A stretch of 64,000 bases of DNA. It comes from Hypanus sabinus (Eukaryota). The stretch's first letter is position 1. Every line of letters starts with the position of its first letter. A program made the position numbers and the translations under genes. The notes under the pieces were generated by a model. The model saw only the letters and a list, made by a program, of their open reading frames with translations. It did not search any database and had not been told where the DNA came from. The stretch covers positions 57,536,001 through 57,600,000 of the forward strand of contig NC_082720.1 in NCBI RefSeq assembly GCF_030144855.1, read 5' to 3'. Shown here piece by piece: positions 1,073 through 62,041 of this stretch.

Positions 1073-1295
1073 CACAGTGAAAACGGGATAACCAGCAGCT
1101 CCGTGGAATTTTGGCAGGAATGCTCTTGAAACTTTAAGCAAAATGCGAGTATACGAATATTTTTTTTCGGGATACATAAAAGGTACGAGTTTCTTTGTGT
1201 TGATATTTTGTTCTATTTAACGCCGGCTCGCTGTTGAAAAGGAAAATGAAGGCAATAGTCGGGGCATGAAACAATTGGAATGTATTATCCTGGCA

Positions 1296-3755
1296 ATGAA
1301 ATATAAAATATATTGGCTGGTAAAATTGCAATTATTATTCTGCACGTTCTCCCCATGGGATGTTGTATCTGGTCAGATCAATTATTCTGTCCCTGAAGAA
1401 TTGCAACCAGGAGCCTTTGTTGGGGAAATCGCGGCCGATTTTGGTTTAGATGTGAAGCAGCTGTCGGTTCGAGGTTTACGGATAGGACCCGGTCCTGGGA
1501 AGCAATATTTCGACGTAAATTTGGAGAATGGGATTTTATTTATGAAAGAAATTATCGACAGAGAACTGCTTTGTGGGTCGAATCCCGATTGTCGCTTATC
1601 GTTGGATGTTGTGCTTGAAAATCCCTTAAGCCTGCACACGGTGGAAGTGGAGATTCTCGATGTAAATGATAATGCTCCTAGTTTCCCGAAAAGACAGCTT
1701 CGCCTTGAAATCATGGAGCTTGCAGCCCCGGGTATGCGATTTCCTCTTGAACCCGCACACGATCCTGACATTGGCACAAACTCTTTGCAAACCTACCAGC
1801 TAGAATCAAATGAGTATTTTACTCTGGACGTGCAAAGGCGCAGCGGGAAGGGAAAACGGCCAGTGTTATTGTTACAAAAACCATTGGACAGGGAAACGAT
1901 GTCAACGCACAATGTGACGTTAACAGCTAAAGACGGCGGTTTGCCGCCGAGATCAGGGACAGCTCTGATTATGATCATAGTGAAAGATGTTAACGACAAT
2001 GCGCCGGTTTTCTCTCAACCGGTTTACAGAATCAGTCTTCTAGAATCTGCGCCGAAAGGAACCCTAGTGATCACGTTGAACGCGACTGACTTGGACGATG
2101 GCCTCAACGGGGAGATAATATATTCATTCCGTAGCCATATTTCTGCTGCTTCTCGTGAGCTGTTTGACCTGAATTCCAAAACAGGTGAAATCAGACTCAA
2201 AGGGAAGTTGGACTATGAAAAAAAACGCGGGTTTGAGATTAACATACAGGCGATGGATAAGGGTTCAGGCGCTGTTCCCGAGTACTGTGACGTAATGGTT
2301 CACATTATCGATGTGAATGATAACGCACCTGAGGTAACTTTACGGTCATTGCAAGCCATAGTTTCTGAGGACGCACCACCTGGAACTGTCGTGGCTTTCT
2401 TCAATACAGAAGACCGTGATTCCGAACAAAATGGTCAAGTACAATGTCAAATTCCAAAGCAATTGCCTTTCAATTTAGATTCATCTATAAAGAACTATTA
2501 CAGAATTCTTGTGCAAAATCAATTGGATCGCGAATACACATCAAAGTACGATATTGTTGTAACATGTACGGACGCGGGAGACCTTCCACTCAGCTCCAAG
2601 AAAACCATCCGAGTAGAGGTTTCAGATATAAATGACAACGCACCAGCGTTTTCTCGCTCAGTATACACAGCAAATGTTATGGAGAACAATGTTATTGGGA
2701 CATCCATATTTTCCATGACGGCCTTCGATTCAGATCTCGGCGAAAATGCTCAAATAATCTTTTCTATCTTGGAGTCTCTGGTTCAGAATTCCTCAATAAC
2801 ATCCTATGTCTCAATTAACTCTTCGAGTGGTGTCATTTATGCTCAGAGATCTTTTGACTACGAACAATTGAAAAGCTTCCAGATTCATGTTGAAGTGCGG
2901 GATTCTGGTGCGCCTGCGCTGAAAGGTAATGCTTCAGTGAAAGTGGTTATCCTTGATCAGAATGATAATGCTCCAGTGATTACACATCCTTTACCCGAAT
3001 ACGGGCCAACAGCAATAGAAACAATATCCAGGTTTGCAGAACCAGGATCTTTGGTTGTAAAGGTATCGGCCACCGATGCCGACTCTGGTCAAAATTCTCG
3101 ACTCTCTTATCAAATTTTTCAGGCCACCCATCATAATCTTTTTACTATTTCCGCAGACACTGGTGAAGTTTGGACTATCCGTCGAATTCTGAACAGGGAT
3201 ACCTCTAATCAAAGGCTGGTGGTCGTCGTAAAGGATAATGGAATTCCATCACTCTCTTCCAGTGTGACTATTGTATTATCTGTTGTTGGAACAAATATTG
3301 AATCATTTCCAAGTGCCAGCAGCTCGTCGACAGATCCGAGGTATACACCTGAACTGAGTCTTTCCCTGGTTATAGCTTTGGGAATAATATCCAGCGTTCT
3401 CTTCATAATTTTAGTCATACTCGCCATTAAAGTTCACATAAACAGGAATGGCATGGTACACGGGCACTATTCAATGGGAACTTGTTGTTGCTTTGAATCA
3501 AGAAATTCTTGGAATGGAATTCAGAGGGCCAGTAAAAACCTTCAGATACAACCGAACTATGTTGAAGTGTTTGGGGGCGATCCGCTCTCTCAGAGATTTC
3601 GTTACGAGTCATGTTCGACATTGCAGTCTACCAAGAGGGATTTCATCGTGCCCAACATATGTAGAACATCTGCAGACAAGAATTATGTATTAAGCGAAAC
3701 TATCGTCAAAGAAAACACTGAAATGGTGAAGTCTGTAAAACACAGTGTGTCCCAG
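1296..3755 (+). CDS. Clustered protocadherin variable exon V1 (group A): signal peptide, EC1-EC6, TM, variable cytoplasmic domain
   Basis: ORF 1266-3770 has six cadherin repeats (DxNDNxP, LDRE/LDYE, AxDxG), an EC1 C-X5-C motif (CGSNPDC) and a TM helix (LVIALGIISSVLFIILVILAI). ATG 1296 (MKYKIYW) aligns with the paralog starts. Phase-0 donor CAG|GTGAGG at 3755/3756; unspliced read-through stops at 3770. Confidence 0.95.
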
Positions 3756-8259: not shown

Positions 8260-8950
8260 AATAACGAAAAAGCCTACCACAAGTAATAGATACAGCCAGT
8301 CCCTCACAGGAAAAAAAGTTCCAACCTTCTGAGCATATCTACAAGGAGAATTGCCCTAAGGACGCAACACCCATCATCAAGGATGTCAAGGCCATGTTCT
8401 GTTCTTGCCTCCGCCATCGGAAAGAAGGTAGAGAAGCCTTCGGTCCCACATAACCAGGTTGAGGAACAGTTATTACCCTTCAACCATCAGGCTCATAAAC
8501 CAGCGTCAACCCACTTCACTCACCTCAATTCTGAACTGATTCCACAGACCAAGTTTCCCGGATTCTACAACTCATGTTGTTAATATTATCAATCTATTCA
8601 TTAATTAATTAATACGTGCATTAATACGTTCATTTATTCACTTACTTAATCATCTATTAATTTGTTTCATAATTTAGCTATAAATTTATCTCAGTTTACC
8701 TACTTTTATTTATTTATTTATCGTTCATTTATTTGCACGTTTATTTATTTATTATTTGTTATTTTCTTTGCCCAATTTGTCTTCTTTTGTACATTGGTTG
8801 TTTGTCAGTTTTTGGTTGAGTATAGTTTTTCATTGACTCTATTCTATTTCTTTGTTCTACTGTTATTGCTTGGAGTAATATATCAGAGTAATATATGATG
8901 ACACTTACATACTTTGATAATGAATTTAGTTTGAACGTTCACCTTTGAAA
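8260..8950 (+). mobile_element. Rex1/Babar-like LINE 3' fragment with an (ATTT)n-rich tail
   Basis: ccatcatcaagga...ccatcggaaagaaggtagagaagcc...aggaacagttattaccc resembles the IIKD..LPSGRRYRS..RNSFYP C-terminus also seen at 43607-43813. Confidence 0.6.
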
Positions 8951-9528: not shown

Positions 9529-9737
9529 CGCCACGAAAACTGGATAACCGTAGACCGGGAAGGTTTGTGTACGATTTATCTCGAATAGAAGACAACGTGT
9601 GAACGTTTAAATGAAAATATTCCTGCAATTTCCAAGAAGGTATAGATATATTCAGCGTCATGTTTGTTCCATCTAATTTAAATCGCCGTTAAAAGGCATT
9701 GTCTCAGATGAAAACATTGGTATGATTTCTCCTGGAA

Positions 9738-12200
9738 ATGAGATATAATATAAACTGGCTGTTGAAATACCAACTGTTTTGCTCTTTGTTCTGTCGTTGG
9801 AATCTAGCTTCTGGGCAGATTCGTTACTCCGTTCCCGAGGAATTACAACCGGGTGCCTTTGTTGGGAATATCGCAATTGATTTGGGGTTTGATTTAAAGC
9901 AGCTGTCAGCTCGCAGATTGCGGGTGGCGCCCAGTCCGAGGAAGCAGTATGTTGAGGTAAATTTGGAAAATGGGGTTTTATTTGTGAATGAAAGAATCGA
10001 TCGGGAACAACTTTGCGGGCCAAGCAGCGATTGCATTTTATCCTTGAACGTTGTACTTGAAAATCCTCTTGGTCTGTATCAGGTGGAAGTAGAGATTATC
10101 GATGTAAATGACAACGCTCCCAGTTTCCCTGAAAGCCACATGCGCTTGGAAATCTCAGAAATTATGGCACCGGGAGTGCGATTCCCCCTCGAGGCCGCGT
10201 ACGATCCGGACATTGGAACTAACTCCTTACAAACATACCAGCTCCTTCCCAATGCATATTTTATTCTTGATGTACAGGAGCGCAGTGGGAAAGGAAAGCT
10301 ACCGGTGTTGATGTTGCAGAGCCCTTTAGACAGAGAAACGGTAACAAGTCTCCAGTTAACGCTTTTAGCCGAAGACGGCGGTGTTCCAATGAAATCAGGC
10401 AAGGCCGAGATAACAATTATAGTGCAGGATGCGAATGACAACGCTCCTGTTTTTTCGCGGTCCGTTTATACCGTGAGTCTGTTGGAAACGGCCCCATTAC
10501 GATCCCTCATTATTACAGTAAACGCCACGGACTTGGATGACGGACCTAATGGAGAGATAACGTATTCCATCAGTAGCCACAGTTCTAAAAATATTCCCGA
10601 AGTATTTAGTGTCGATTCAAAAACCGGTGAAATCAGATTGAAAGGACACCTGGACTATGAACAAAGTAATTTTTTTGAGATTAATATTCAAGCAGTCGAT
10701 AATGGCCCTTACGCGATACCGCAGCACTGTGATGTGCTGGTGAATGTTATCGATGTGAATGACAATGCTCCTGACATGAAGTTAACGTCTACGTTAAGTG
10801 CGGTGCCAGAGGATACCTCTGTTGGGACAATAGTGGCACTCCTCAGCGTAGATGACAAAGATTCTGGACAAAATGGACAGGTGCAATGCAAAATATCAAG
10901 CCAACTGCCGTTTAAGCTCGACTCGTCTGTAGAAAACTTTTATAGACTGCTTATACGGCAATCGCTTGATCGTGAAACTACTTCCAGGTATGATATTACC
11001 ATAACATGTACGGATGCGGGGTATCCTAATCTAACATCCACAGAAACGATTCGACTAGATGTGACAGATGTTAATGACAATGCTCCGAGGTTTCTACAAG
11101 CAGTACACACAGCGCATGTCATGGAGAACAACGTTATTGGTGCTTCCATATACTCGTTAACTGCTTTTGACTCAGACATAGGACAGAACGCCCGTCTGAA
11201 CTTTTCCATCCTGCCATCTCAGGTTCAGAATATCCCTATTGACTCTTATATCTCCATCAACGCACAAAGTGGTGTCATATATGCTCAGAAATCTTTTGAC
11301 TATGAGAAATTTAAAAAAATTAAGATTTACGTTCAGGTGCAGGATTCTGGAACCCCACCCCTCCGCAGTAACTCCTCTGTAGATGTTGTTGTCCTTGATC
11401 AGAACGACAACGCTCCAGTCATCGTGTATCCTTCGCCTCAATATGGGTCAACAGTAATGGAGACAATATCCAGGTTTGCTGAACCTGGACACCTCGTTGT
11501 CAAGGTGTCTGCTACTGACGCCGATGCCGGTCAGAATGCTCGTCTATTTTATCAGGTAGTGCAAGCCACTCATCGCAATCTGTTCACAATTTCAGCAGAC
11601 ACAGGGGAAATTTGGACAATCCGCCGTATTGAGAACAAGGATGCCTCCAAGCAAAGGCTGGTGATTGTCGTGAGAGATAATGGAACTCCATCACTCTCTG
11701 CCACTGTGACCATAATATTATCCGTGGAAGGGGACGAAATGATGTCTAGTGCCACCAATTTATCCAAAAACGACGATTTTGCTCCCGATTTGAACTTCTC
11801 CTTGGTCATCGCCTTAGGAACAACTTCTGCTGTCTTGCTAATTATTTTAGTTATCCTCGCGTTTAAGGTTCATAAAACAAGAAATGATGTTGGATGTCGA
11901 TACAGATCTCTGAATACCTGTTGCTGCTTGGGATCAAGGAATTCTTTGAATGGGATTCAAAAGGCCAGCACGAGCCTTCAGATACCACCGAACTACGTTG
12001 AGGTATTCGGAGGTGATCCACTTTCCCAGAGTTTCCGTTACAAGTCCTGTTCAACGTTGCAGTCTGTGAAGAGAGACCTCGCGATCCAGCAAACTTGCGG
12101 GTTGTCTACAGATTCGCATTACAGCCTGCGGAAGTTTGTTCGGAAAGAGAATGCAGGAATGACAAAGCCTGAGGAGTGCAATTGCAATGTATATACTGAG
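9738..12200 (+). CDS. Clustered protocadherin variable exon V2 (group B, keeps the long EC5 loop)
   Basis: 825-aa ORF 9738-12215 with six EC repeats and a TM helix. Phase-0 donor GAG|GTGAGG at 12200/12201. Confidence 0.95.
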
Positions 12201-18067: not shown

Positions 18068-18299
18068 CACAATGAAGACAGGATAGCCAGCAGCTCTGAG
18101 ATTTTTCCACGAGTCCTCTCACACTGTAAAGAAATACGACCATTTCATTGAAATAATTCGAGCGATTGCCAAGAGGTACGGATCTATTCTGTATCGTTTC
18201 TTTTTTTCTCTCTCTCACTGTTTAACGCTTATACACTGCAGAAAGGATAATACGTAAGACTGCCTGGGCCTGTAACATTTGGAATGACTTCCACTGGAA

Positions 18300-20759
18300 A
18301 TGAGATATAAAGTATATTGGTTGCTGAAATGCCAATTGTTGTTCTGTGTGTTCTGTCTGTTGGATATTGTATATGGTCAGATTCGTTACTCTATTCCTGA
18401 AGAACTACAACCGGGAGCTTTTGTTGGAAAAATCGCTGCCGATTTAGGTTTAGATGTGGAGCAGCTGTCGGCTCGCCACTTGCGGGTAGCGCCCAGTCCT
18501 GGTAAGCAGTATTTCGACATAAATTTGGAGAATGGGATTTTAATTGTGAAAGAAATAATCGACAGGGAACTGCTTTGTGGGTCGAATCTCGACTGCCGCA
18601 TATCGTTGGATCTTGTGCTTGAAAATCCCCTGAGCCTGTACCAGGTGGAAGTGGAGATTCTCGATGAAAATGATAATGCTCCCAGTTTTCCGAAAAGCCA
18701 GCTTCATCTTGAAATTATAGAGCTTGCAGGACCCGGAATGCGATTTCCTCTTGAACCTGCACACGATCCGGACATTGGCACAAATTCCTTGCAAACCTAC
18801 CATTTACAATCAAATGACTATTTTAGTCTGGACGTACAAATGCGACGTGGGAAGGGCAAGTGGCCAGCATTGTTGTTACAGAAACCTTTGGACAGAGAAA
18901 TAATGGCGACGCATAGTTTAACGTTAACAGCAGAAGACAGCGGGTTCCCTCCCAGATCGGGTACAGTGCAGATTATAGTAACAGTGAAGGATGTTAATGA
19001 CAATGCGCCTATTTTCTCCCAGCCGGTTTACAGAGTTAGATTATTGGAATCTGCACCAAAAGGGACCCTGATTATCACATTGAACGCAACTGATATGGAC
19101 GATGGTCTGAATGCAGAGATAATGTATTCTTTCCGTAGCCAAATACCTTCGACTTCCCGTAGCCTTTTTGATCTGAATTCCAAAACTGGTGAAATCAGAC
19201 TCAAAGGGAAGTTGGACTATGAAGAAAGCAACGTCTTTGAAATTAACATACAGGCGACAGATAAGGGTCCTGGCGCTGTTCCTGAATACTGTGATGTTTT
19301 AGTTGAAGTTGTCGATGTAAATGATAATGCACCGGAGGTGAAATTGCGGTCTTCCTCGACGACTGTTTCGGAAGACGCTCCACTTGGGACTGTAGTAGCC
19401 CTGTTCACTGCAGAGGATAGAGATTCCGGACAAAATGGTCAGGTACATTGTCAAATTTCAAATCGACTACCCTTTAAGCTGGATTCGTCTTTAAAGAACT
19501 ATTACAGAACTATTGTACAGCATCCACTCGACCGCGAAAGCAACCCCAAGTATGATATCATCATTGTATGCACGGATTCAGGGGAGCCTTCCCTCACTTC
19601 CAAGAAAACCATCCGAGTAGAGGTTTCAGATATAAACGACAACGTTCCAAAGTTTTCTCGCCCGGTATACACAGCAAATGTCATAGAAAACAACGTTATC
19701 GGAGCTTCCATATTTTCTCTGACGGCCTTCGATGCAGACGCTGGAGAGAACGCCCGACTGAACTTTTCTATCCTAGAGTCTCAGGTTCAGAATTTCTCAA
19801 CAACCTCCTATGTTTCAATTAATTCAGCAAGTGGTGTTATCTATGCTCAGAGATCTTTTGACTATGAACAATTGAAAAACTTTCAGATTCAAGTTCAAGT
19901 GCAGGATTCTGGTACGCCACCTCACACGAGTAATGCCTCAGTAAACGTGGTTATCATGGATCAGAATGATAATGTTCCAGTGATTGTGCATCCTTTACCC
20001 GAATACGGGTCGTCAGCAATAGAAACAATATCCAGATTCAGTGAACCGGGGTCCTTGGTTGTCAAGGTATTGGCCACCGATGCCGACTCTGGTCAGAATG
20101 CTCGACTTTCGTATCAGATTCTTCAAACCACCCACAGCAACCTTTTTACCATTTCTGCAGACACTGGTGAAATTTGGACTATCCGTCGAATTTTGAAAAG
20201 AGATGTTTCTAATCAGAGACTGGTGGTTTTGGTAAAAGACAATGGAGAACCACCCCTTTCTGCCACCGTAACTATATTATTATCTGTGGTTGGGACTGAT
20301 AGAGAATCGTTTTACGGTGTCAGTAGCTCTTCGGCAGATTCGCAGAGCGTTCCTGAACTGAGCCGTTCTTTGGTTATAGCCTTGGGAATAATAACTGGCT
20401 TACTGCTCATGATGTTAATCATCCTCGCCATTAAAGTTCACAGAAACAGGAAAGGAATTGTATACGAGCACCGTTCTCTGGGTACTTGTTGTTGCTCTGA
20501 ATCAAGAAACTCTTTGAATGGAGTACAGAAGACCAGTAAAACCCTTCAGATACCACCAAATTATGTTGAAGTATTTGGGGGCGATCCTCTCTCACAAAGA
20601 TTCCGTTACGGGTCATGTTCGACACTGCAGTCTACCAAGAGGGATTTCACCGTCTCCATCAACAGTCGATCCTCTGCAGACCAAAATTTTGTTCTGAGCG
20701 AATCTGCCTGTAAAGGAAATGTTGGAATGGTGGATTCTGAAAAATGTAGCGTTCCTGAG
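18300..20759 (+). CDS. Clustered protocadherin variable exon V3 (group A)
   Basis: ORF 18300-20870 with six EC repeats and a TM helix. Phase-0 donor GAG|GTAAGG at 20759/20760; the last 36 aa of the ORF are intronic read-through. Confidence 0.95.
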
Positions 20760-28069: not shown

Positions 28070-28286
28070 CACAGAGAAAACTGAGTAGCCTGCAGCTCCG
28101 TGGGATTTTTGCACAAATCATTTCATCTGTAAGGAAATGTGAGTATTTGATTGAAATAATTCGAGCGATTGTCAAGAGGTACGAATATGTCTTGTGCCGT
28201 TTGTCCGACTTAACACCGAATCACAGCTAAAAGGACAATAGAATACTGTCTGGGCTTAAAAAGCATTGGAATGACTTCTACTGGAA

Positions 28287-30746
28287 ATGAGATATAAAAT
28301 ATATTTGTTGCTACAATGCCAATTGCTGTTCTGCGTGTTCTGCTTGTCGAATACAGTGTCTGGTCAAATTCGTTATTCTATTCCTGAAGAACTCCAAAGG
28401 GGAGCCTTTGTTGGGAAAATCGCGGCAGATTTGGGTTTAGACGTAAAGCAGCTGTGGGCTCGCAGATTGCGGATAGCGGCCAGTCCACAAAAGCAGTATT
28501 TCGACGTAAATGTACAGAATGGAATTTTATTTGTAAAAGAAATTATCGACAGGGAACTGCTTTGTGGGTCAGATCTCGATTGTCGCTTATCGGTGGAAAT
28601 TGTGCTTGAAAATCCTCTGAGCCTGTACCAGGTGGAAGTGGAAGTTCTCGATGTAAATGACAACGCTCCCAGTTTCCCAAAAAGCCAGTTTCGTCTGGAG
28701 ATCTCGGAACTTGCAGCACCGGGTATGCCATTTCCTCTGGAACCCGGGCATGATCCGGACATCGGCACAAACTCCTTGCAAACCTACCAGCTAGAATCCA
28801 ATGAATATTTTACTCTGGACGTACAAATGCGCAGTGGGAAGGGCAAGTGGCCAGTACTGTTGCTACAGAAACCTTTGGACAGAGAAATACTGGCGACGCA
28901 AAGTATGACGTTAACCGCAGAAGACGGTGGGTTGCCTCCGAGATCGGGTACAGTGCAGATTATAGTTATAGTGAAGGATGTTAATGACAATGCGCCTGTT
29001 TTCTCCCAGCCAGTTTACAGAGTGAGATTGTTAGAATCTGCACCAAAAGGGACCCCGATTATCACATTGAACGCAACTGATAAAGACGATGGCCTCAATG
29101 GAGAGATAATGTATTCTTTTCGTAGCCATATCTCTTCGACTGCTCGTAAACTTTTTGATCTGAATTCCAAAACTGGTGAAATCAAACTGAAGGGGAACTT
29201 AGACTATGAAGAAAAAAATGTTTTTGAGATTAAAATACAAGCGGCAGATAAGGGTCCTAACGCTGTTCCCGAGTACTGTGATGTATTTGTTGAGGTGATT
29301 GATGTGAATGATAACGCGCCGTTTGTGATATTGCGGTCTTCCTCTGCGACTGTTTCGGAAGATGCTCCACTTGGGACTGTAGTGGCCCTGTTCACTGCAG
29401 AGGATAGAGACTCCGGAAAAAATGGACAGGTACGTTGTCAAATTTCACATCAACTACCTTTTAAGCTGGATTCATCTTTAAAGAACTACTACAGAATCCT
29501 TGTTCTGCACCCGCTCGACCGCGAAAACAATTCCAGGTTTGATATTACCATTACTTGCACGGATGCGGGGGACGTTCCTCTCATTTCCAGGAAGACCATC
29601 CGAGTAGAGGTTTCAGATATAAACGACAACGCGCCAAGGTTTTCTCGCTCAGTATACACAGCAAATGTTATGGAAAACAACGTCATTGGAGCTTCCATAT
29701 TTTCCCTTACGGCCTTCGATGCAGACGCTGGAGAGAACGCCCGACTGAACTTTTCTATCCTAGAGTCTCAGGTTCAGAATTTCTCAACAACCTCCTATGT
29801 TTCAATTAGTTCAGCAAGTGGTGTTATCTATGCTCAGAGATCTTTTGACCACGAACAACTGGAAAACTTTAAGATTCAAGTTCAAGTGCGGGATTCTGGT
29901 ACGCCACCTCACACGAGTAATGCGTCAGTGAACGTGGTTATCATGGATCAGAATGATAATGTTCCAGTGATTGTGCATCCTTTACCCGAATACGGGTCGT
30001 CAGCAATAGAAACAATATCCAGATTCAGTGAACCGGGGTCCTTGGTTGTCAAGGTATCGGCCACAGATGCAGACTCGGGTCAGAATGCTCGACTCTCTTA
30101 TGAGATTTTTCAAGCCACACATCATAATCTTTTTACCATTTCGGCAGAGACTGGCGAAATTTGGACTATCCGTCGAATTTTCAGTAGTGATGCTTCCAAT
30201 CAAAGACTAGTGGTTGTGGTAAAAGACAATGGAATGCCATTACTTTCTGCCACTGTGACGATTGTATTATCTGTGGTTGGGACGGATAGTGAAACGTTCT
30301 CCAGTGTCAGTAGTTCTTCCGTAGATCCCAACATCACTCCAGAACTGAGCCTTTCCTTGGTTATAGCCTTGGGAATAATATCTAGCATTTTGCTCATTAT
30401 GTTAATCATCCTTGCCGTTAAAGTTCACAAAAACAGGAATGGTGCGGTTGGCCAGCATCATTACCTGAGTTCTTCTTGTTGCTTCGAAAAAAGAAATAGT
30501 TTCAATGGAATTCAAAAGGCCAGTAAAAGCCTTCAGATACCACCAAACTATGTTGAAGTGTTTGGGGGCGATCCTCTCTCCCAAAGATTCCGTTATGAGT
30601 CATGTTCGACATTGCAGTCTACCAAAAGGGATTTCACCCTCCCCAGCATGAGCAGATCCTGTGCAGACCAAGATTTTGTTCGGAACGAATCTGTCGGTAA
30701 AGGAAATATTGCAATGGCGGATTCTGAAAAATACAGCATTCCTGAG
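28287..30746 (+). CDS. Clustered protocadherin variable exon V4 (group A, closest to V3)
   Basis: ORF 28287-30779, colinear with V3 at an offset of 9987 nt. Donor GAG|GTGAGG at 30746/30747. Confidence 0.95.
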
Positions 30747-38577: not shown

Positions 38578-38781
38578 CGCCGTGAAAACGGCAGAGCCAG
38601 CGGTACCAGAGCATTTATTTGTTTCAACCCGGAGACAACATGCGAACATTTCAATAGAAACAGAAGGGTAAATTTGGAAAAAGGTACCGCTAATTTTTGC
38701 ATGAATTTATCCGTTATAATTGAAACCGCAATAAGAAGACTTTGTATCCGGGCGAAACCTTTGGAATGATTTCTCCTGGAA

Positions 38782-41214
38782 ATGAGAGATAATATAAACT
38801 GGCTGCTGAAATACCAACTGTTTTTCTCTTTGTTCTGTCGTTGGAGTCTTGCTTCTGGGCAGATTCGTTACTCTATTCCCGAGGAATTACAACTGGGTGC
38901 CTTTGTTGGGAATATCGCAATTGATTTGGGGTTAGATTTAAAGCAGCTACCGTCTAGACGTTTGCGGGTGGCGCCCAGTCCGAGGAAGCGGTTTGTTGAC
39001 GTAAATTTGGAGAATGGAATTTTATATGTGAATGAAAGAATTGACCGGGAACAACTATGCGGGCCGAGCACTGAATGCGTTTTAATATTCAACGTTGTAC
39101 TTGAAAATCCCCTGGCTCTGCACCAGGTGGAAGTGGAGATTCTCGATGTAAATGACAATGGTCCCAGTTTCCCTCAAAGCCAGATACGCCTGGAAATCTC
39201 AGAGATTATGGCACCGGGAGCAAGATTTCCCCTTGAAACTGCGCACGATCCGGATGTCGGAACTAACTCCTTACAGACATACCAGCTCCTTCCCAATGAT
39301 TACTTTATTCTTGATGCACAGGTACGAGATGGTATAGGAAAGTTCCCGTTATTGGTGCTGCAAAGGGCTTTGGACAGAGAAACGATATCGACCCATCAGA
39401 TAACTCTAATTGCCGTAGACGGCGGAGTCCCTGTGAAATCGGGCACGGCCCAGGTAACAATCACAGTGAAGGATGCGAATGACAACTCTCCTGTTTTCCA
39501 GCAGGCAGTTTATAAGGTCAATATTTTGGAATCGGCTCCCACAGGAACACCGATTATCACGGTAAATGCCACTGATATGGACGATGGTCGAAATGCAGAG
39601 ATAATATATGCCCTCAGCAGGCATAATTCAGCTGAGGTTCGCGAATTAGTTGGGGTGAACTCCAAAACTGGTGAAATCACACTGAAAGGACCGTTGGACT
39701 ATGAACAACAAAGAACATTTATGATTAATATTCAAGCAATCGATAATGGTCATCCCACGATGTCCCAACACTGCGATGTTCTGGTGGACGTAATCGACGT
39801 GAATGACAACGCTCCTGAGCTGATCTTCACATCCATTGTAAATGCCGTAACAGAAAATGCTGCAGTGGGAACTATTGTCGCCCTTATCACCGCAGAAGAT
39901 AAGGATTCTGGACAAAATGGGCAAGTACAATGTCAAATTCCGAATAAACTTCCCTTTAAGTTAGATTCGTCAATAACCAACAGTTGGATACTGCTTATAC
40001 AGCATGAGCTAGATCGCGAAACTACCTCGAGTTATGACGTCACTGTAACTTGCATGGACACGGGGAACCCTCAGCTCACATCTAAGGAAACGATCCATGT
40101 GGAAGTTTCAGATGTAAATGATAATGCCCCAAGCTTTACACAGCCTACATACACGGTAAATGTCATGGAAAATAACGCCATTGGGAATTCTATATTCTCT
40201 CTGAACGCCTTCGATCCAGACACGGCACAGAATTCCCGCTTGAACTTTACTATCCTGAATTCACCCGCAGCTTCGTATGTCTCCATCAACTCGCAGACTG
40301 GTGTCATATTTGCTCGGAGATCCTTTGATTACGAGCAGTTAAAAAACTTTCAGATATACATTAAGGTTCAGGATGCTGGAGTCCCACCACTCGCCAGTAA
40401 CGCTACAATCGATGTTAATATCCTTGATCAGAACGACAATCCCCCGGTGATCGTGCATCCTCTGCCCGAGTATGGGTCAACAGTAATGGAGACAATAAGC
40501 AGGTTTGCTGAACCTGGATACCTCGTTGCCAAGGTTTCAGCTACTGACGCCGATACTGGGCAGAATGCTCGTCTGTCTTACCACATTTTTCAGGCTACCA
40601 ATCGAGATCTTTTTACTATTTCAGAAATCACCGGTGAAATTTGGACTATCAGGACGATTCAGAGGAAGGATGCTTCTAAGCAAAGACTTGAGATTGTCGT
40701 AAAAGATAACGGAATGCCCTCACTTTCAGCCGCAGTAACCATAGAGATATATGTGACAGGAAGTGAAACGATCTCCAGCTCCACCAGCTTAAGCAACGAT
40801 CGTGAATTCTCTCCCAAAAGAAACCTTTACTTAGTCATAGCCTTAGGGTCGATATCTATAATTTTCCTCGTAATTTTAATTATTCTTGCTATTATAGTTC
40901 ATAATAATAGAAATGGAATGGAATGCCAGTACAATGTTTGTTATTGTTTGGAAACAAGAAATTTTCTAAATGGGACTCAAAAAGCCAGTAGAAGCCTTCA
41001 TATACCACCGAACTACGTTGAGGTATTCGGAGGTGATCCACTTTCTCAGAGTTTCCGTTACGAGTCGTGTTCGACTTTGCAGACCATGAAGAGAGACTTT
41101 ACAACCCCGCACGGACCATCTCCATCTGTTCCCTACAGCCAAAAGAAACTCATAGTGAAAGAGACCCTTGGCATCCTAAACTCTGAAGTCTACAGTTACA
41201 ATACAAATAATGAG
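38782..41214 (+). CDS. Clustered protocadherin variable exon V5 (group B)
   Basis: ORF 38782-41259 with six EC repeats and a TM helix. Donor GAG|GTGAGC at 41214/41215. Confidence 0.95.
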
Positions 41215-45519: not shown

Positions 45520-45729
45520 CGCCGTGAAAACGGCATGAGAAACAACACCGGAGTATCTGTACACAGTTCGTTTCAAACTGGAGACGACGTAAGAACATTT
45601 CAATGTAAATAACAGAGAATATCGTAAAAGGGAGGCGAGTGTTTTCTGCATCGCAAATTATCATTTGCCTAAATCGCTGCTAAAAGGCTTTGTCTCGGGT
45701 CGAAACTATTGGAATGATTTCTCCTGGAA

Positions 45730-48168
45730 ATGAGAGATAATATACACTGGTTGGTGAAATATCAGCTGATTTGCTGCTTGTTTGCCCATTTGGATTTTGT
45801 TCGTGGCCAGATTCGTTATTCAGTTCCCGAGGAATTGCAAGTAGGTGCTTTTATTGGGAATATCGTACTTGATTTGGGGCTAAATTTAAAACAGCTGTCG
45901 GCTCGCAGATTGCGGGTGGCGCCCAGTCCGAGGAAGCAATATATTGACGTCAGTATGGAGAATGGGATTTTATTTGTGAATGGAAGAATCGACCGGGAGC
46001 AACTTTGCGGGCCAAGCATCGAATGCGTTTTATCATTCAACGTTGTGCTTGAAAATCCCCTCGGTCTGTACCAGGTGGAAGTGGAGATTCTCGATGTAAA
46101 TGACAACGCTCCCAATTTCCCTGAAAGCCAGATCAGACTGGAAATCTCAGAGATTATGGCACCGGGAGTGCGATTCGCTCTCGAGGCCGCACAAGATCCG
46201 GACATTGGAACTAATTCCTTGCAGACATACCATCTCCTTCACAATGAATATTTCATTGTCGATGTACAAGTACACGATGGTATAGGAAAGTTCCCAGTAT
46301 TGGTGTTGCAAAAGGCATTGGACAGGGAAACGATATCGACCCATAGGTTAACGCTACTTGCTGAAGACGGCGGAGTCCCTGCGAAATCCGGCACAGCCCA
46401 AATAACAGTCACAGTGAAGGATGCGAATGACAACTCTCCTGTTTTTCCGAAGTCGGTTTATAAGGTAAATCTGTTGGAATCGGCTCCCATAGGAACTCTG
46501 ATTGTTACGTTAAACGCTACTGATTTGGACGATGGCCCGAATGGGGAGATAACGTACGCCCTCAGCAGCCAGAATCCAGCTGTGGTTCGCGAATTAGTTG
46601 ATGTGAATCCCAAAACTGGTGAAATCAAACTAAAAGGACCATTGGACTATGAACAACGCAGAACATTTATGATTAATCTGCGAGCAGTCGATAATGGTCC
46701 GTACCCAATGCCCCAGCACTGCGATGTGTTTGTGGATGTCATCGACGTTAATGACAACGCTCCAGAAATGTCAGTGACGTCCCTGTCAAATGCCGTGGCA
46801 GAAAATGCTCCAGTGGGAACCCTTATCTCCCTCCTCAGTGCGGAAGATAAGGATTCTGGGCAAAATGGGCATGTCGAATGTCGAATTACGAATAATCTTC
46901 CCTTTAAGTTAGATTCCCCTGTGAAAAACAATTGGAAACTATTTATACAGCATGCACTGGATCATGAAACTACCTCCAGGTATGACATTACGGTGACTTG
47001 CACAGATGCAGGGACGCCGCCCCTCACATCCAAGGAAACGATCCATGTGGAAGTTTCAGATGTAAATGATAATGCGCCAAGATTTACGCAGTCTCTATAC
47101 ACAGCAAATGTTATGGAGAACAACGTTATTGGGGAGTCCATATTCTCCCTGACAGCTTTCGATCCAGACACAGGTCAGAATTCCCGATTGGACTTTACTA
47201 TCCTGGATTCATCCGAGGCCTCATATGTCTCCATCAACTCCCAGAGTGGTGTCGTATTTGCTCAGAGATCTTTTGATTACGAACAGTTAAAAAACTTTCA
47301 GGTATACATTAGGGTTCAGGATTCTGGTGTCCCACCCCTCTCCAGTAACACGACAGTTAATTTTGTTATCCTTGATCAGAACGATAACGCCCCAGTGATT
47401 ATACATCCTTTACCCGAGTATGGGTCAACAGTAATGGAGACAATATCCAGGTTTGCTGAACCTGGATACCTTGTGGTCAGGGTCTCAGCTACTGATGCCG
47501 ACGCTGGTCAGAATGCCCATCTGTCTTACCACATTTTTCAAGCTACCCATCTCGATTTGTTCACGATTTCTGCGGACTCTGGTGATATTTGGACTATCCG
47601 TAGTATACGAAATAAGGATGCTATAAAACAACGGCTGGTGATTGTTGTAAAAGATAAGGGAACACCCTCACTATCAGCCACGGTAACCATAGCAATATCT
47701 GTGACAGGAAGTCAAAAGGTCCCCAATGCCACCAGCTTAAGCAAAGATCGCGAGTTCTCCCCTAAAATGAACCTTTACTTAGTCATAGCATTAGGAACGA
47801 CATCTATTGTTTTCCTCATAATTTTAATTATCCTTGCTATTAAAGTTCATAATAACAGTAACGGAATTAGATGCCAATACAATGTTTGTTACTGTTTGGA
47901 AACAAGAAACTTAAATGGAACTCAAAAAGCTCGAAGAAGCCTTCAGATACCGCCTAACTATGTTGAGGTATTCGGAGGTGATCCACTTTCTCAGAGCTAC
48001 CGTTACGAGTCACCATGTTCAACTTTGCGGTCAGTGAAGAGAGAATTCCCGACACCCCACACACGAGGAGTGTCTACAGATATTCCCTATGCACAGCAGA
48101 AACTTCTTGGGAAAGAAAGTGCAGGAATGGTAAATCCTGAAATCTACAGCTGCAATACACATAATGAG
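45730..48168 (+). CDS. Clustered protocadherin variable exon V6 (group B)
   Basis: ORF 45730-48177. Donor GAG|GTGAGT at 48168/48169. Confidence 0.95.
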
Positions 48169-50857: not shown

Positions 50858-50987
50858 GCTTTAAGAAATTAGCTAATTCCAATTGGCCAAATATGAAAGC
50901 TTCATCGTTCACCAATCAGAAGCTGAGCTGCAAGTGGTGATCCGCGCAGCCCCCTTCAATACGCAGCCGCCATCACGTACGATCAGA
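50858..50987 (+). promoter_or_regulatory. V7 promoter module
   Basis: GCTTTAAGAA 50858; ATTGG 50882; CCAAT 50912 (25-nt spacer); GTGATCC; GCCGCCATC; GATCAGA. Confidence 0.8.
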
Positions 50988-51195
50988 TGCCGTAAAAACT
51001 GGATACCAGCAGCACCGGAGGATTTACACACGGCTCGTTTCGAATTGGAGAAAAATGAGAAAATAGCAATCCAAACAACATAGGAGATATCAAAAACGTG
51101 CAAATATTTTCTGCAACGTATTGGTCCCAGTTAAATAAATCGCTGTGAAAAGGCATTGTCTCGGGTCGAAACCATTGGAATGATTTCTCCTGGAA

Positions 51196-53640
51196 ATGAG
51201 AGATAATATACTCTGGTTAGTAAAATATCAGCTCTTTTGCTGTTTGTTTGCCCGTTTGGATTTTGTTAGGGGGCAGATTCATTATTCTGTTCCCGAGGAA
51301 TTGCAACTGGGTGCCTTTGTTGGGAATATTACAATTGATTTGGGGTTAAATTTAAAGGAGCTGTCAGCTCGTAGATTGCGGGTGGCGCCCAGTCCGAGGA
51401 AACGGTATGTTGACGTTAATTTGGAGAAGGGGATTTTATTTGTGAATGAAAATATCGACCGGGAGCAACTTTGCGGGCCGAGCACCGAATGCGTTTTATC
51501 ATTTAACGTTGTGCTTGAAAATCCCCTCGGTCTGCACCAGGTGGAAGTGGAGATTCTCGATGTAAATGACAACGCTCCCAGTTTCCCCAACAGTCAGATT
51601 CGTCTGGAAATCTCAGAGATTATGGCACCGGGAGCGCGATTCCCCCTCGAGGCAGCGCACGATCCGGATATTGGAGCTAATTCCTTACAGACATATCAGC
51701 TCCTTCCCAATGAATATTTCATTCTTGACATAGAAGAACGTGATAGAATAGGAGCATTACCGTTGTTGGTTCTACAAAGGGGTTTGGACAGAGAAAAGAT
51801 ATCGACGCATCAGTTAACGCTACTTGCTGAAGACGGCGGAGTCCCCGTGAGGTCAAGCACTGCACAAATAATAATCATTGTAAAGGATACGAATGACAAC
51901 TCTCCTGTTTTCTCGCAGTCGGTTTATAAGGTCAATACGTTAGAATCGGCTCCCATGGGAACGCTGATTATCACGCTAAACGCCACTGATTTGGACGATG
52001 GTACGAATGGAGAGATTACATATGCCCTCAGCAGCCATAATTCAGCTGAGGTCCGTGCGTTAGTACGTGTGAATTCCAAAACCGGTGAAATTAGACTGCA
52101 AGATCACTTGGACTATGAAAAAAGAAAGACTTTTGTAATCAATATTCAAGCAGTGGATAATGGTCAACCCGCAATGTCTCGGCGCTGCGATGTGCTGGTG
52201 GATTTAATCGATGTGAATGACAACGCACCTGAACTTACGGTGACATCTTTGTCAAATGCCGTGCCAGAAAATGCCCCAGTGGGAACTATTGTCGCCCTTC
52301 TTAATGCAGAAGATAAAGATTCTGGGCACAATAGACAAGTGCAATGTCAAATTCCGAATAAACTTCCCTTTAAGTTAGATTCCCCCGTGAAGAATAATTG
52401 GAAACTGCTGATACAGCATGAACTGGATCGCGAAACTATCTCTAGGTATGACATCACTGTAACTTGCATGGACACAGGGAACCCTCCCCTCACCTCTAAG
52501 GAAACTATCCATGTGGAAGTTTCAGATGTAAATGATAATGTCCCAAGTTTTACACAGCCTAGATACACGGCAAATATTATGGAGAACAATGTTGTTGGGG
52601 ATTCCATATTCTCTCTGACAGCCTTCGATCCAGATACTGGGCAGAACGCCCGACTGAAATTTAGTATTATGAATTTATCCGTAGCCTCGTATGTCTCCAT
52701 CAATTCAAAGAGTGGTGTCATCTTTGCGCAGAGATCGTTCGATTACGAGAGATTGAAAAACTTCCAGATCCAAGTTCAGGTGCAGGACTCTGGAGTCCCA
52801 GCCCTCACCAGTAACGTCACAATTGATGTTGTTATCCTTGATCAAAACGATAATACCCCAGTGATTGTGCATCCTTTACCTGAGTTTGGGTCAACAGTAA
52901 TGGAGACAATATCCAGGTTTGCTGAACCTGGATACCTCGTGGTCAAAGTATCAGCCACGGACGCCGACGCTGGTCAGAATGCCCGTCTGTCTTACCACAT
53001 ATTTCAGGCTACCCATCGCGATTTGTTTACTATTTCAACGGACACTGGTGAGGTTTGGACTATCCGTGGTATACAAAGTAAGGATGCTTCTAAACAGCGA
53101 CTGGTGATTGTTGTAAAAGATAATGGAAGGCCCTCACTATCGGCCACAGTAACCATAGTAATATCTTTGGCAGGGGGCGAAACGATCACCAGTGCTACCA
53201 GTTTAAGTAAAGATCATGAGTTCTTCCCTGATCTGAACCTTTATTTGGTCATAACATTAGGGACAATATCTGTAATTTTTCTAGTAATTTTAATTATCCT
53301 TGCTATCAATGCTTATAACAGAAACGGAATAAGATGCCATTACAGCTCTCCGAATATCTGTTGCTGTTGGAAAACAAGAAATTTCCTAAATGGAACTCAA
53401 AAGGCCAGTAGAAGCCTTCATATACCACCAAACTATATTGAAGTATTTGGAGGTGATCCACTTTCTCAGAGCTTCCGTTACGAGTCGTGTTCAACGTTGC
53501 ATTCCGTAAAGAAAGAACTCACGGCCCCACACAAACGTGGACCACCTGCAGAAAATTCCTACGCAAAGCAAGCAACTCTAGCTAAAGAAAGTGCAGGAAT
53601 GGTAAGTTCTGAAATCTACAGCTGCAATACAAGTAACGAG
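51196..53640 (+). CDS. Clustered protocadherin variable exon V7 (group B)
   Basis: ORF 51196-53673. Donor GAG|GTGAGT at 53640/53641, plus a second in-frame candidate donor ATG|GTAAGT at 53601/53602. Confidence 0.95.
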
Positions 53641-53917
53641 GTGAGTTACTTCGCAAAAGAAAATAGTTTTTGAAGCCATTCCATTTAATGAGACGAATTT
53701 AATTTCTACATCAAAATGTCTTTGTGCGTATTGATTTCGATCCTCATATCTATTTGCTATCTATTGCTTTCTATCCTATTTTTTTCAGGATTTTGTAGAT
53801 CCAATGACTGCGACACCAGTTTCTGGAATCCCACGTGATTCTCTTTCGCCTGTCTATCCTTTTTAAATTTTATCGAAATTCTCGTGGGTTGTCTGTATTT
53901 GATGCGCAATATTTTTG

Positions 53918-55000: not shown

Positions 55001-55412
55001 ATTTTAAGATATATGATCATAACCAATTAAGGGCACTAAGAGACCAATCCATTCCTCAAGACAATCCAAGAGAGTGCTATAGTCATTTTTTTCGAAGGCA
55101 GCACTTCGATCTGGAAGAATTAGAACTGAGATTCTGTTGGCAACACTGCTGAACCAAAGGTCTCCGACGGCTTCAGTATAGGTTGTCTCAATGCTGTGGG
55201 TTGCTCAAATCCTGACTGAATTTTTTCTCTCTTTCATAAAGTTGTTGAGTTGGTTGAGTTGAGAAATGACTTGCTCAAGAATCTTGTTTAGGAAGGGAAT
55301 ATTTGATAAAGGCCTGCAGTTAGCTGGTGCCTCACAATAGATGTTTGGCTTCTTAAATAGCGTTTTGACTGCCACTGTTCAAAGGCATGTGGAAAAACAT
55401 CAGTTTCAATTG

Positions 55413-56040
55413 ATAGAAACATAGAAACATAGAAAACTACAGCACAATACAAGCCCTTCGGCCCACAAAGTTGGGCCGAGAATGTCCCTACCTGAGAAAT
55501 TACTATGCTTACCAATAACCTCATTTTTTAAGCACCATGTACCTATCCAAAGGTCTCTTAAAAGACCAGATTGTATCCGCCTCCACCACCGTTGCCGGCA
55601 GCCCATTCCACGCACTCACCACTCTCTGAGTAAAAAAACTTACCCCTGATATCTCCTCTGTACCTACTCCCCAGCCTCTTAAACCTGAAAACATGAGGAA
55701 ATCTGCAGATGCTGGAGATTCAAGCAACACACACAAAATGCTGGTGGAACGCAGCAGTCCAGGCGGCATCTATAGGGAGAAGTGCTGTCGACAGCGCATC
55801 TCCCTATAGATGCATCTTAAACCTGCGTCGTCGTGTGACAACCATTTCAGCCCTGGATAAAGTCTCAGACTATCCACATGATCAATGCCTCTCATCACCT
55901 TATACAACTCTATCAGGTCACCTGTCCTGATCCGGCGCTCCAAGGAGAAAAGGCCGAGTTCACTGAACCTATTGTCATAAGGCATATTCCTCAATCCAGG
56001 CAACATTTGTAAATCTCCTCTGCACCCTTTCTATGGTTTC
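55413..56040 (-). mobile_element. CR1-type LINE 3' fragment interrupted by a Penelope pLTR piece
   Basis: Minus-strand MLPGL..LGLFSLERR..GDLIELYK and FFTQRVVSAWNGLP; (tagaaaca)n tail. Confidence 0.9.
55688..55814 (-). mobile_element. Short Penelope pLTR insertion with a terminal 48-bp palindrome and 11-bp TSD
   Basis: TSD TCTTAAACCTG at 55677-55687 and 55815-55825. The body is reverse-complement homologous to 32288-32352. The palindrome 55766-55813 is centred on GTC|GAC. Confidence 0.8.
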
Positions 56041-56641
56041 CAAGGCTGACCAGAGACTTAATGCTAGACATCGTGGCATGCTGGTGTATATTTTACACAA
56101 AGTCAAAAGCATTAGCTTTTGCTTAGGAAAATACAATGGAGAGTATTGAATGAAGGGACTTTCACCAAATTTTGAATAGCTATAGAAAAAATCCGATTTA
56201 TTCGGCTATTTATTGTCCACAGAAACATATTTTACCTCATATAAATGAAAATGTTGTTAATGGATTCGTTTACATTATACACAGAGAGGTTAGTCATCTG
56301 GCAAAACAGTTGTGTTTTAATTTTTCCTTTGGTTTTGTGCACGGTGTGAGCGCGACAATTACATGAGAATTAATTAACAGGTGGTCATGACTATAAAAGC
56401 AAGATGAAACTGGACTCTGCATGTAATTTGATTATTTACAAGAGGAGACATGTGGTTGAATTTGATCGAGATTCCCATGGGTTTACCACATGTTAAGTTT
56501 TTTAAATTTTCACAACATAGTTTCAGAAACTACGATTCTGGAATGTAATTTTGACAGAAATCAAAATCATCTAGAATGCTAAAATAAATATCAATTGTGC
56601 ACCATTAAATGTAACAAACTGCGCTAAATTACGTAGTTCTG

Positions 56642-56772: not shown

Positions 56773-56980
56773 CGCCGTGAACACTGCAGAGTACGCAGCA
56801 TTGGAGGATTTAAACGCGGATCTTTTCGAATTGGAGAGAAAAAATAATAATATTTCGATGTAAGCAACAGTGTATAACAAAAGGTACGGACATTTTCTGC
56901 ATCGTATTTTCCCATTTATATAAATCGCTGTGAAAAGGCATTGTCTCGAGTCGAAACCATTGGAATGATTTCTCCTGGAA

Positions 56981-61828: not shown

Positions 61829-62041
61829 CGCCATGAAAACTGAATAGCAGGCAGCACCGGAGGATTTATACACGATTCTTTTCGAATTAGAGAATAAAAA
61901 ACGACAACATTTCAATGGAAACAGTAGGGGAAATAACAAGAAGGTACGGATATTCTCTGATTCTCCATTTTACCATTTAAATAAATCGCTCTTATAAGGC
62001 ATTGTCTCGGATCGAAACTATAGGAATGATTTCTCTTGGAA

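Follow-up and report, generated by a model that had tools for sequence, protein, structure and literature searches.

A retained out-of-frame ATG 16 nt upstream of the start codon of nu-type protocadherin genes in cartilaginous fish, a candidate leaky-scanning attenuator

We analyzed a stretch of 64,000 nucleotides from the stingray Hypanus sabinus, hereafter the window (C33:57,536,001-57,600,000, contig NC_082720.1, in a genome of 4.04 Gb), which holds nine variable exons of a clustered protocadherin locus. Each of the nine genes carries an additional, out-of-frame ATG (upstream ATG, uATG) exactly 16 nt before the ATG of its main open reading frame (ORF). Comparison with other protocadherin genes of Hypanus and of five further cartilaginous fishes revealed that this uATG is a feature of one subcluster, the nu-type genes, and that its three bases are held by purifying selection. 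Judged from the sequences, the uATG may well act as a leaky-scanning attenuator of the overlapping upstream-ORF (uORF) kind.

Direct inspection of the window bore out the nine uORFs listed in a preliminary description of this DNA. Every one opens with an ATG exactly 16 nt 5' of the main ATG and runs for 8 codons to a TAA at +9 to +11 of the main ORF, with the peptides then given, and G occupies position -3 of both the uATG and the main ATG. The nine uORFs are as follows:

1280 to 1306, + strand: uORF of gene 1, peptide MYYPGNEI, stop TAA, uATG at -16
9722 to 9748, + strand: uORF of gene 2, MISPGNEI
18284 to 18310, + strand: uORF of gene 3, MTSTGNEI
28271 to 28297, + strand: uORF of gene 4, MTSTGNEI
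38766 to 38792, + strand: uORF of gene 5, MISPGNER
45714 to 45740, + strand: uORF of gene 6, MISPGNER
51180 to 51206, + strand: uORF of gene 7, MISPGNER; probable cDNA contigs span the uATG position
56965 to 56991, + strand: uORF of gene 8, MISPGNER
62026 to 62052, + strand: uORF of gene 9, MISLGNER

To follow the uATG beyond the window, 1 kb was fetched around 58 further protocadherin starts of the Hypanus genome. Within one contiguous subcluster of 26 genes, all but L004 have the out-of-frame ATG at -16 (25 genes: loci L005-L008, the nine window genes, and L009-L020), while none of the 41 Hypanus protocadherin genes beyond this nu subcluster has it (37 in the other subclusters of the cluster and 4 non-clustered). 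The element had been described as cluster-wide; it is instead confined to the nu-type subcluster. Other Hypanus subclusters have near-start out-of-frame ATGs of their own, which are inconsistently kept. In L026-L038, 6 of 13 genes have such an ATG at -10, inside AATTGAATGCGGAACA, and the block is retained even in genes that lack the ATG; in L051-L053, an out-of-frame ATG is found at -25 in all three genes.

A cross-species set was then assembled from 47 nu-type starts of Hypanus, Pristis pectinata, Narcine bancroftii, Rhincodon typus, Heptranchias perlo, and Callorhinchus milii, with skates and catsharks outside the sample. The ATG stands at -16 in 39 of the 47 starts and at -17 in two more, both from Callorhinchus, and none of these 41 ATGs shares the frame of the main ORF. 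The six species that carry the uATG, Callorhinchus included, lie on both sides of the elasmobranch-holocephalan split, which indicates that the feature predates the divergence of chimaeras from sharks and rays. That split lies more than 400 My back, and an age of about 425 My has reportedly been given for chondrichthyans. Nothing comparable was seen upstream of about five bat alpha genes and a similar number of damselfish genes that were sampled. To our knowledge, the nu subcluster has been reported from cartilaginous fish only, and mammals lack it.

To measure retention, a tree of the 47 nu-type genes was built from coding positions +34 to +249, and parsimony changes were counted for each column. 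The three uATG columns changed 4, 5, and 3 times, compared with a mean of 16.25 (range 11-22) for leader columns -60 to -29, and the nearby columns -13, -9, -8, and -7 changed 11-13 times each. The main ATG columns showed no change and the G at -3 of the main ATG a single one; the first 30 coding bases are likewise unusually conserved. When an ATG was simulated on the tree at the leader rate, about 3 of 47 tips retained it and none of 5000 runs left more than 19, against 39 observed; retention in 39 or more tips never occurred in 5000 runs at the leader rate and had a probability of 0.0006 at the average coding rate. Together, the column counts and the simulation provide good support for purifying selection on the three uATG bases.

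The context of the uATG is adequate and not strong. Its -3 base is G in 39 of 41 genes and A in one, with -2, -1, and +4 variable and G at +4 in a single gene. The main ATG of the same 41 genes carries G at -3 in 39 and a purine at +4 in 40. The scarcity of G at +4 of the uATG is suggestive of avoidance and is nonsignificant once shared ancestry is allowed for. As for the reading frames that the uATG opens, 29 of 41 are short and overlapping (8-9 codons) and 10 are long (15-52 codons), so that 39 overlap the main ORF; the other two end before the main ATG, in L020 (3 nt upstream) and in L062 of the whale shark, a bare ATG-TAG. In the latter (L062:9985-9990, Rhincodon typus, main start at 10001), the ATG at exactly -16 is directly followed by TAG.

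Conservation of the element therefore concerns neither the 8-codon length nor the TAA. The earlier statement that the TAA survives changes in the overlapping coding residues holds inside the window (9 of 9) and fails in the adjacent close paralogs L009 and L010, just beyond it, where a synonymous T>C change in an Asp codon (now GAC) and a Tyr codon (now TAC), respectively, has abolished the stop and extended the uORFs to 29 and 52 codons. Measured against neutral expectation in the subcluster and in other chondrichthyans, conservation therefore extends to the uATG and the G at its -3, and not to the TAA at +9. The T at +9 is, all the same, the least-changed third position (4 changes versus 5-13 at other third positions), and it occurs in 43 of 47 genes, compared with 52-62% T-ending Tyr and Asp codons in the same genes. 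With the stop lost in two neighboring paralogs and 12 of 41 uORFs being other than short overlaps, the case for selection on the TAA or on a short uORF is weak. A functional micropeptide was ruled out, as the peptides vary freely (MISPGNER, MTSTGNEI, MLCVANGIL, MFCAGNEIL, and the long forms); such variation is expected of a uORF that acts independently of its sequence.

An N-terminal extension in the main frame was rejected as well, given an in-frame TGA at -15 to -13 in most Hypanus genes and conservation that is not periodic. In gene 1 alone, an extra in-frame ATG at -30 (1266-1268) opens a frame that is free of stops up to the main ATG. The in-frame TGA of most other genes is absent there because a T follows the uATG, and the ATG at -30 could add 10 residues to the N terminus. 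A second small uORF was found in one sub-lineage, with an out-of-frame ATG at -50 and 7 codons, its stop being the TGA of a conserved cTGAAAC at -29. It occurs in gene 1 (window position 1246), L005, L007, L008, L060:9951, L061:9951, and L063:25671, that is, in stingray, sawfish, electric ray, and sevengill shark.

Whether the uATG is transcribed was assessed with contigs from four small runs, inferred to be RNA, that were placed on gene 7; none of the runs recorded as RNA contained this stretch. The contigs cover the gene from 50957 (X3), 50971 (X1), or 51009 (X4) to about 53644, with coverage of the leader from about -225/-240, and three of the four runs have no contigs in the flanks. Contig depth over the leader equals that over the exon in three runs (67 versus 51-90, 13.8 versus 10.7-18.7, and 9.9 versus 8-10). 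Record 17 of X3 (50957-51299) spans both ATG positions and record 25 of X4 (51009-51217) spans the uATG position; no splice joints are reported in the contigs for the gene 7 leader. At the other end, record 24 of X3 and record 32 of X4 stop matching at 53644 with 15-17 letters left, 4 nt beyond the donor GAG/GTGAGT (the slash marks the splice junction). Constant exon 1 starts with GTGAAACAACC (GTGAA), and a spliced cDNA would therefore match exactly four bases past the donor, which provides good indirect evidence that the X3 and X4 contigs are spliced transcripts. The uATG thus probably lies inside the mRNA leader.

The leader sequences agree with this placement. In the leaders from -230 to -20, with the ATG at -16 set aside, ATG is the most depleted of 12 trinucleotides (observed/expected 0.76), as is expected for a leader that is scanned; the ATG at -16 would then be a deliberate exception. 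Further upstream, a strongly conserved promoter-like block extends from about -330 to -220 in species from stingray to chimaera and contains GCTTTAAGAAATG, GATTGG, CCAATCAGAAGC, GAGATCC, and CCACCAT. The preliminary description of the upstream leader as much diverged is therefore correct in part only, since the far upstream region is not uniformly so. The block consists of two CCAAT boxes, the first inverted and the second direct, at a distance of about 30 bp, followed by GAGATCC, a C-rich stretch, and CCACCAT or GCCGCCAT (YY1/TISU-like); inspection by eye showed no obvious core of the CTCF type. In gene 7 it is located as follows:

50879 to 50975, + strand: promoter block of gene 7, with CCAAT boxes at 50879 and 50912, GATCC at 50938, and CCGCCAT at 50967; equivalents lie at about -330 to -220 at the other eight genes

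The 5' ends of the leader contigs, at 50957 and 50971, fall at the GCCGCCAT motif. Protocadherin promoters of mouse and frog carry the conserved sequence element (CSE) about 200 bp upstream of the ATG (PMC4978886), and the nu promoter block is comparable in position. A donor-like AG/GTAC or AG/GTAT was also observed at window positions 1182, 9639, 18175, 28178, 38683, 56883, and 61943 (about -98 to -125); it is lost in genes 6 and 7. In sharks and chimaera, this motif reads CAG/GTATT and is accompanied by an acceptor-like YAG/GAATTATTGAAC near -58. A leader mini-intron of 55-80 nt is possible, with both of its sites upstream of the uATG; no such joint was seen on gene 7, whose leader is without the donor-like motif.

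The preliminary description had proposed a translational attenuator. What stands of this proposal is a uATG that is selectively retained, probably in the leader, out of frame, and in a moderate Kozak context; what falls is its cluster-wide extent and its constant length and TAA. For a retained uATG of this kind, capture of ribosomes combined with leaky scanning is the most economical reading, and the invariant core, G-N-N-A-T-G, suits the requirements of a start codon in adequate context and not those of the TEAD-like or ATTGG motifs, which makes it Kozak-like rather than motif-like. The scanning model of initiation is the established basis of such a mechanism. Under it, the ATG at -16 would be an upstream start codon in the approximately 230-nt 5' leader of nu-type mRNAs and would be met first by scanning 43S complexes. 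With G at -3 but hardly ever at +4, some ribosomes would start there and the rest would leak to the main ATG 16 nt further on. Those that start would read a few out-of-frame codons without conserved meaning and, in most genes, terminate beyond the main ATG, and would thereby be lost to protocadherin synthesis. The element would then be a constitutive attenuator, with a strength that depends on the stringency of start-codon selection. On balance, we lean toward this attenuator as the function of the uATG. Initiation at the uATG, the size of its effect, and any regulation through eIF1, eIF5, or eIF2-alpha are what we infer from it, and equalization of isoform dosage or sensing of the eIF2-alpha/eIF1 state, both raised in the preliminary description, would be pure conjecture.

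Several observations weigh against the attenuator. Six of the 47 nu-type starts are without a uATG: L004 and its Narcine ortholog, which have a different leader in common, two Heptranchias genes (one with ATT, one with GTG and an out-of-frame ATG gained at -5), and two Callorhinchus genes. The length and stop of the uORF are variable. Each leader holds about three further, non-conserved ATGs between -230 and -20, some of which may precede the transcription start site, so that the ATG at -16 is not the sole obstacle to scanning. The runs are RNA by inference, and their contigs differ from the window by 6-7%, which indicates that they come from other species or paralogs. Leader bases outside the normal Kozak window (AA at -27/-26, T at -21, and TTT at -12 to -10) are almost as invariant as the uATG itself. 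Finally, the spacing between the two ATGs is fixed at 16 nt in 39 genes, with just two 1-nt indels in 41; a plain uORF need only avoid multiples of three, and the fixed spacing is thus not explained by a plain uORF.

These last two features would be accounted for by a motif of about 20 nt (GAAAC-ATTGGAATG-TTT) that is read by a DNA- or RNA-binding protein, for isoform choice, mRNA localization, or stability, with the ATG being incidental and some translation from it still compatible. Such a motif would explain the low-change columns at -27, -26, -21, -19, -17, and -12 to -10 and the fixed distance to the main ATG. It is also in line with the L026-L038 subcluster, which keeps an AATTG(A/C)(A/C)TG block 10-17 nt before the ATG even without a uATG. 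Yet none of the known motifs is maintained throughout (GGAATG is intact in 25 of 41 genes, ATTGG in at most 17 of 41), the invariant core suits a start codon, and the element shows neither RNA structure nor, by eye, a CTCF-like core and lies about 200 nt downstream of the protocadherin promoter elements. In addition, ATG is otherwise selected against in nu leaders. We regard the protein-read motif as the main live alternative, and as rather unlikely.

Less likely still, the 16-nt spacing could be functional in itself, as a stringency-sensitive switch that responds to eIF1/eIF5, perhaps with a link to nonsense-mediated decay when termination comes early. The leading edge of a ribosome whose P site holds the uAUG reaches the main AUG, which would put the two starts in direct competition. 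If true, this switch would determine, once a promoter has been chosen, how much protein each nu-type isoform yields, and would amount to translational control in genes of neuronal self-recognition, a layer that would have gone unnoticed because mammals lack the nu subcluster.

Two further explanations appear very improbable. The first supposes that the ATG has no function and hitch-hikes with the constrained surroundings of the start codon, spread by tandem duplication and gene conversion; clustered protocadherins do duplicate and gene-convert (cited in PMC4978886), the nine window genes are close paralogs, and their first 30 coding bases are unusually conserved, but the uATG is kept in six species and in both deep sub-lineages of the subcluster, its neighbors at -13, -9, -8, and -7 have changed 11-13 times, and the simulation rejects neutral retention. 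The second, that the uATG is outside the mature mRNA owing to a downstream transcription start or to a leader intron that removes it, is made conceivable by the conserved donor-like CAG/GTA at about -100 to -125 and by contigs that cannot define a 5' end, but it has to face genome-colinear contigs that run from about -225/-240 through the uATG position (record 17 of X3, record 25 of X4), a sole acceptor-like site, at about -58, that lies upstream of the uATG, and the 13 nt between the two ATGs, which have no AG acceptor.

Individual known elements were also compared with the region. The TEAD-like DNA motif named as an alternative in the preliminary description fits poorly, with GGAATG intact in just 25 of 41 genes against a persistent ATG and purine at -3; a TEAD/M-CAT site was rejected, as other genes have GAAATG, GGGATG, GCAATG, GGTATG, GGCATG, AGAATG, or TACATG, with the ATG kept in all. 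An NF-Y site was likewise discarded: 17 of 41 genes have ATTG ending at the -3 G, so that no more than 17 can contain the full ATTGG. The true CCAAT boxes are found at about -285 and -320. Identity with the CSE or with a CTCF site was dismissed because the element is at -16, not at about -200, and has no CTCF-like core by eye. No conserved RNA fold was found around the two ATGs (alifold consensus empty, single-sequence mean z of 0.13), and Rfam gave no matches across the whole window.

The nine main ORFs of the window each encode Cadherin_2, five cadherin repeats, and Cadherin_C_2 (Pfam domains) over 815-856 codons. The eight complete ones close near a phase-0 donor of the GAG/GTGAG type and the ninth continues beyond the window end. 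A protein search identified Callorhinchus 'protocadherin nu' as the closest named relatives of the window proteins, a search of the genome with protein sequence placed about 70 variable exons in the 55.99-57.66 Mb interval of C33, and the tree places the nine window genes as close paralogs. Their assignment to the nu-type subcluster is based on a single large variable exon, the Pfam domains, phase-0 donors, constant exons downstream on the same contig, and Callorhinchus nu proteins among the matches. The variable exons are as follows:

1296 to 3755, + strand: variable exon of gene 1, coding part, main ATG to phase-0 donor CAG/GTGAGG
9738 to 12200, + strand: variable exon of gene 2, coding part, donor GAG/GTGAGG
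18300 to 20759, + strand: variable exon of gene 3, coding part, donor GAG/GTAAGG
28287 to 30746, + strand: variable exon of gene 4, coding part
38782 to 41214, + strand: variable exon of gene 5, coding part
45730 to 48168, + strand: variable exon of gene 6, coding part
51196 to 53640, + strand: variable exon of gene 7, coding part, donor GAG/GTGAGT
56981 to 59389, + strand: variable exon of gene 8, coding part
62042 to 64000, + strand: variable exon of gene 9, which leaves the window

Constant exon 1 of the nu subcluster (VKQPNTDWRFSQTHRAELN) lies outside the window at C33:57668290-57668350 (L068), 8 kb beyond the last variable exon, with the acceptor ttgtag/GTGAAACAACC and the donor CAG/GTACGTG; additional constant exons are found at 57.678, 57.716, 57.730, and 57.734 Mb. 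Between genes 7 and 8, window positions 55300-56100 show contig depths of 10^4-10^5 and many rearranged joints in all four runs and are a high-copy interspersed repeat. An AT-rich 35-nt tandem repeat with 1.9 copies occupies the intergenic positions 8705-8771.

Work on the expression of clustered protocadherins has focused on promoter choice (CSE, CTCF/cohesin, methylation), and our literature searches found no paper on a uORF or an upstream AUG in these genes. Overlapping uORFs are known as a class; what would be new is a putative one in a gene family where none had been reported. If the attenuator is real, the output of nu isoforms would also be set at translation, through a start codon kept at one position in most of the subcluster since before the chimaera split. 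The reach of this finding is limited by a nu subcluster known from cartilaginous fish only, by the lack of an equivalent in the sampled bat and damselfish genes, and by the familiarity of the class.

Among known systems, the CSE, or CGCT box, bound by CTCF is likewise a short conserved non-coding element repeated before each variable exon; it lies about 200 bp upstream and acts on transcription, whereas the nu element is at -16 in the leader and has no CTCF-like core (PMC4978886). At the position of the CSE, nu promoters have CCAAT, GATCC, and CCACCAT blocks instead. Start-stop elements, in which an AUG in the 5' leader is directly followed by a stop codon, resemble the whale-shark gene L062 only (1 of 41) and are not the general form here. 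Hox mRNAs contain conserved inhibitory uORFs, and eIF1 and eIF5 use AUGs in poor context to sense start-codon stringency. The nu genes share with these systems conserved uAUGs in non-optimal context in paralogous developmental or neural genes, which could tie their output to eIF1/eIF5, and differ in gene family, position, and the 16-nt spacing. The closest likeness is to the overlapping uORFs (oORFs) that ribosome-profiling surveys of zebrafish, mouse, and human have made well known as vertebrate translational repressors: an out-of-frame AUG in the leader, an ORF that ends past the main AUG, output through leaky scanning, and a conserved uAUG with a peptide that is not. In the nu genes, the overlap is not strict, as the uORF stops upstream of the main ATG in 2 of 41 cases and is long in 10 of 41, and a single uAUG has stayed at one distance in dozens of paralogs for more than 400 My.

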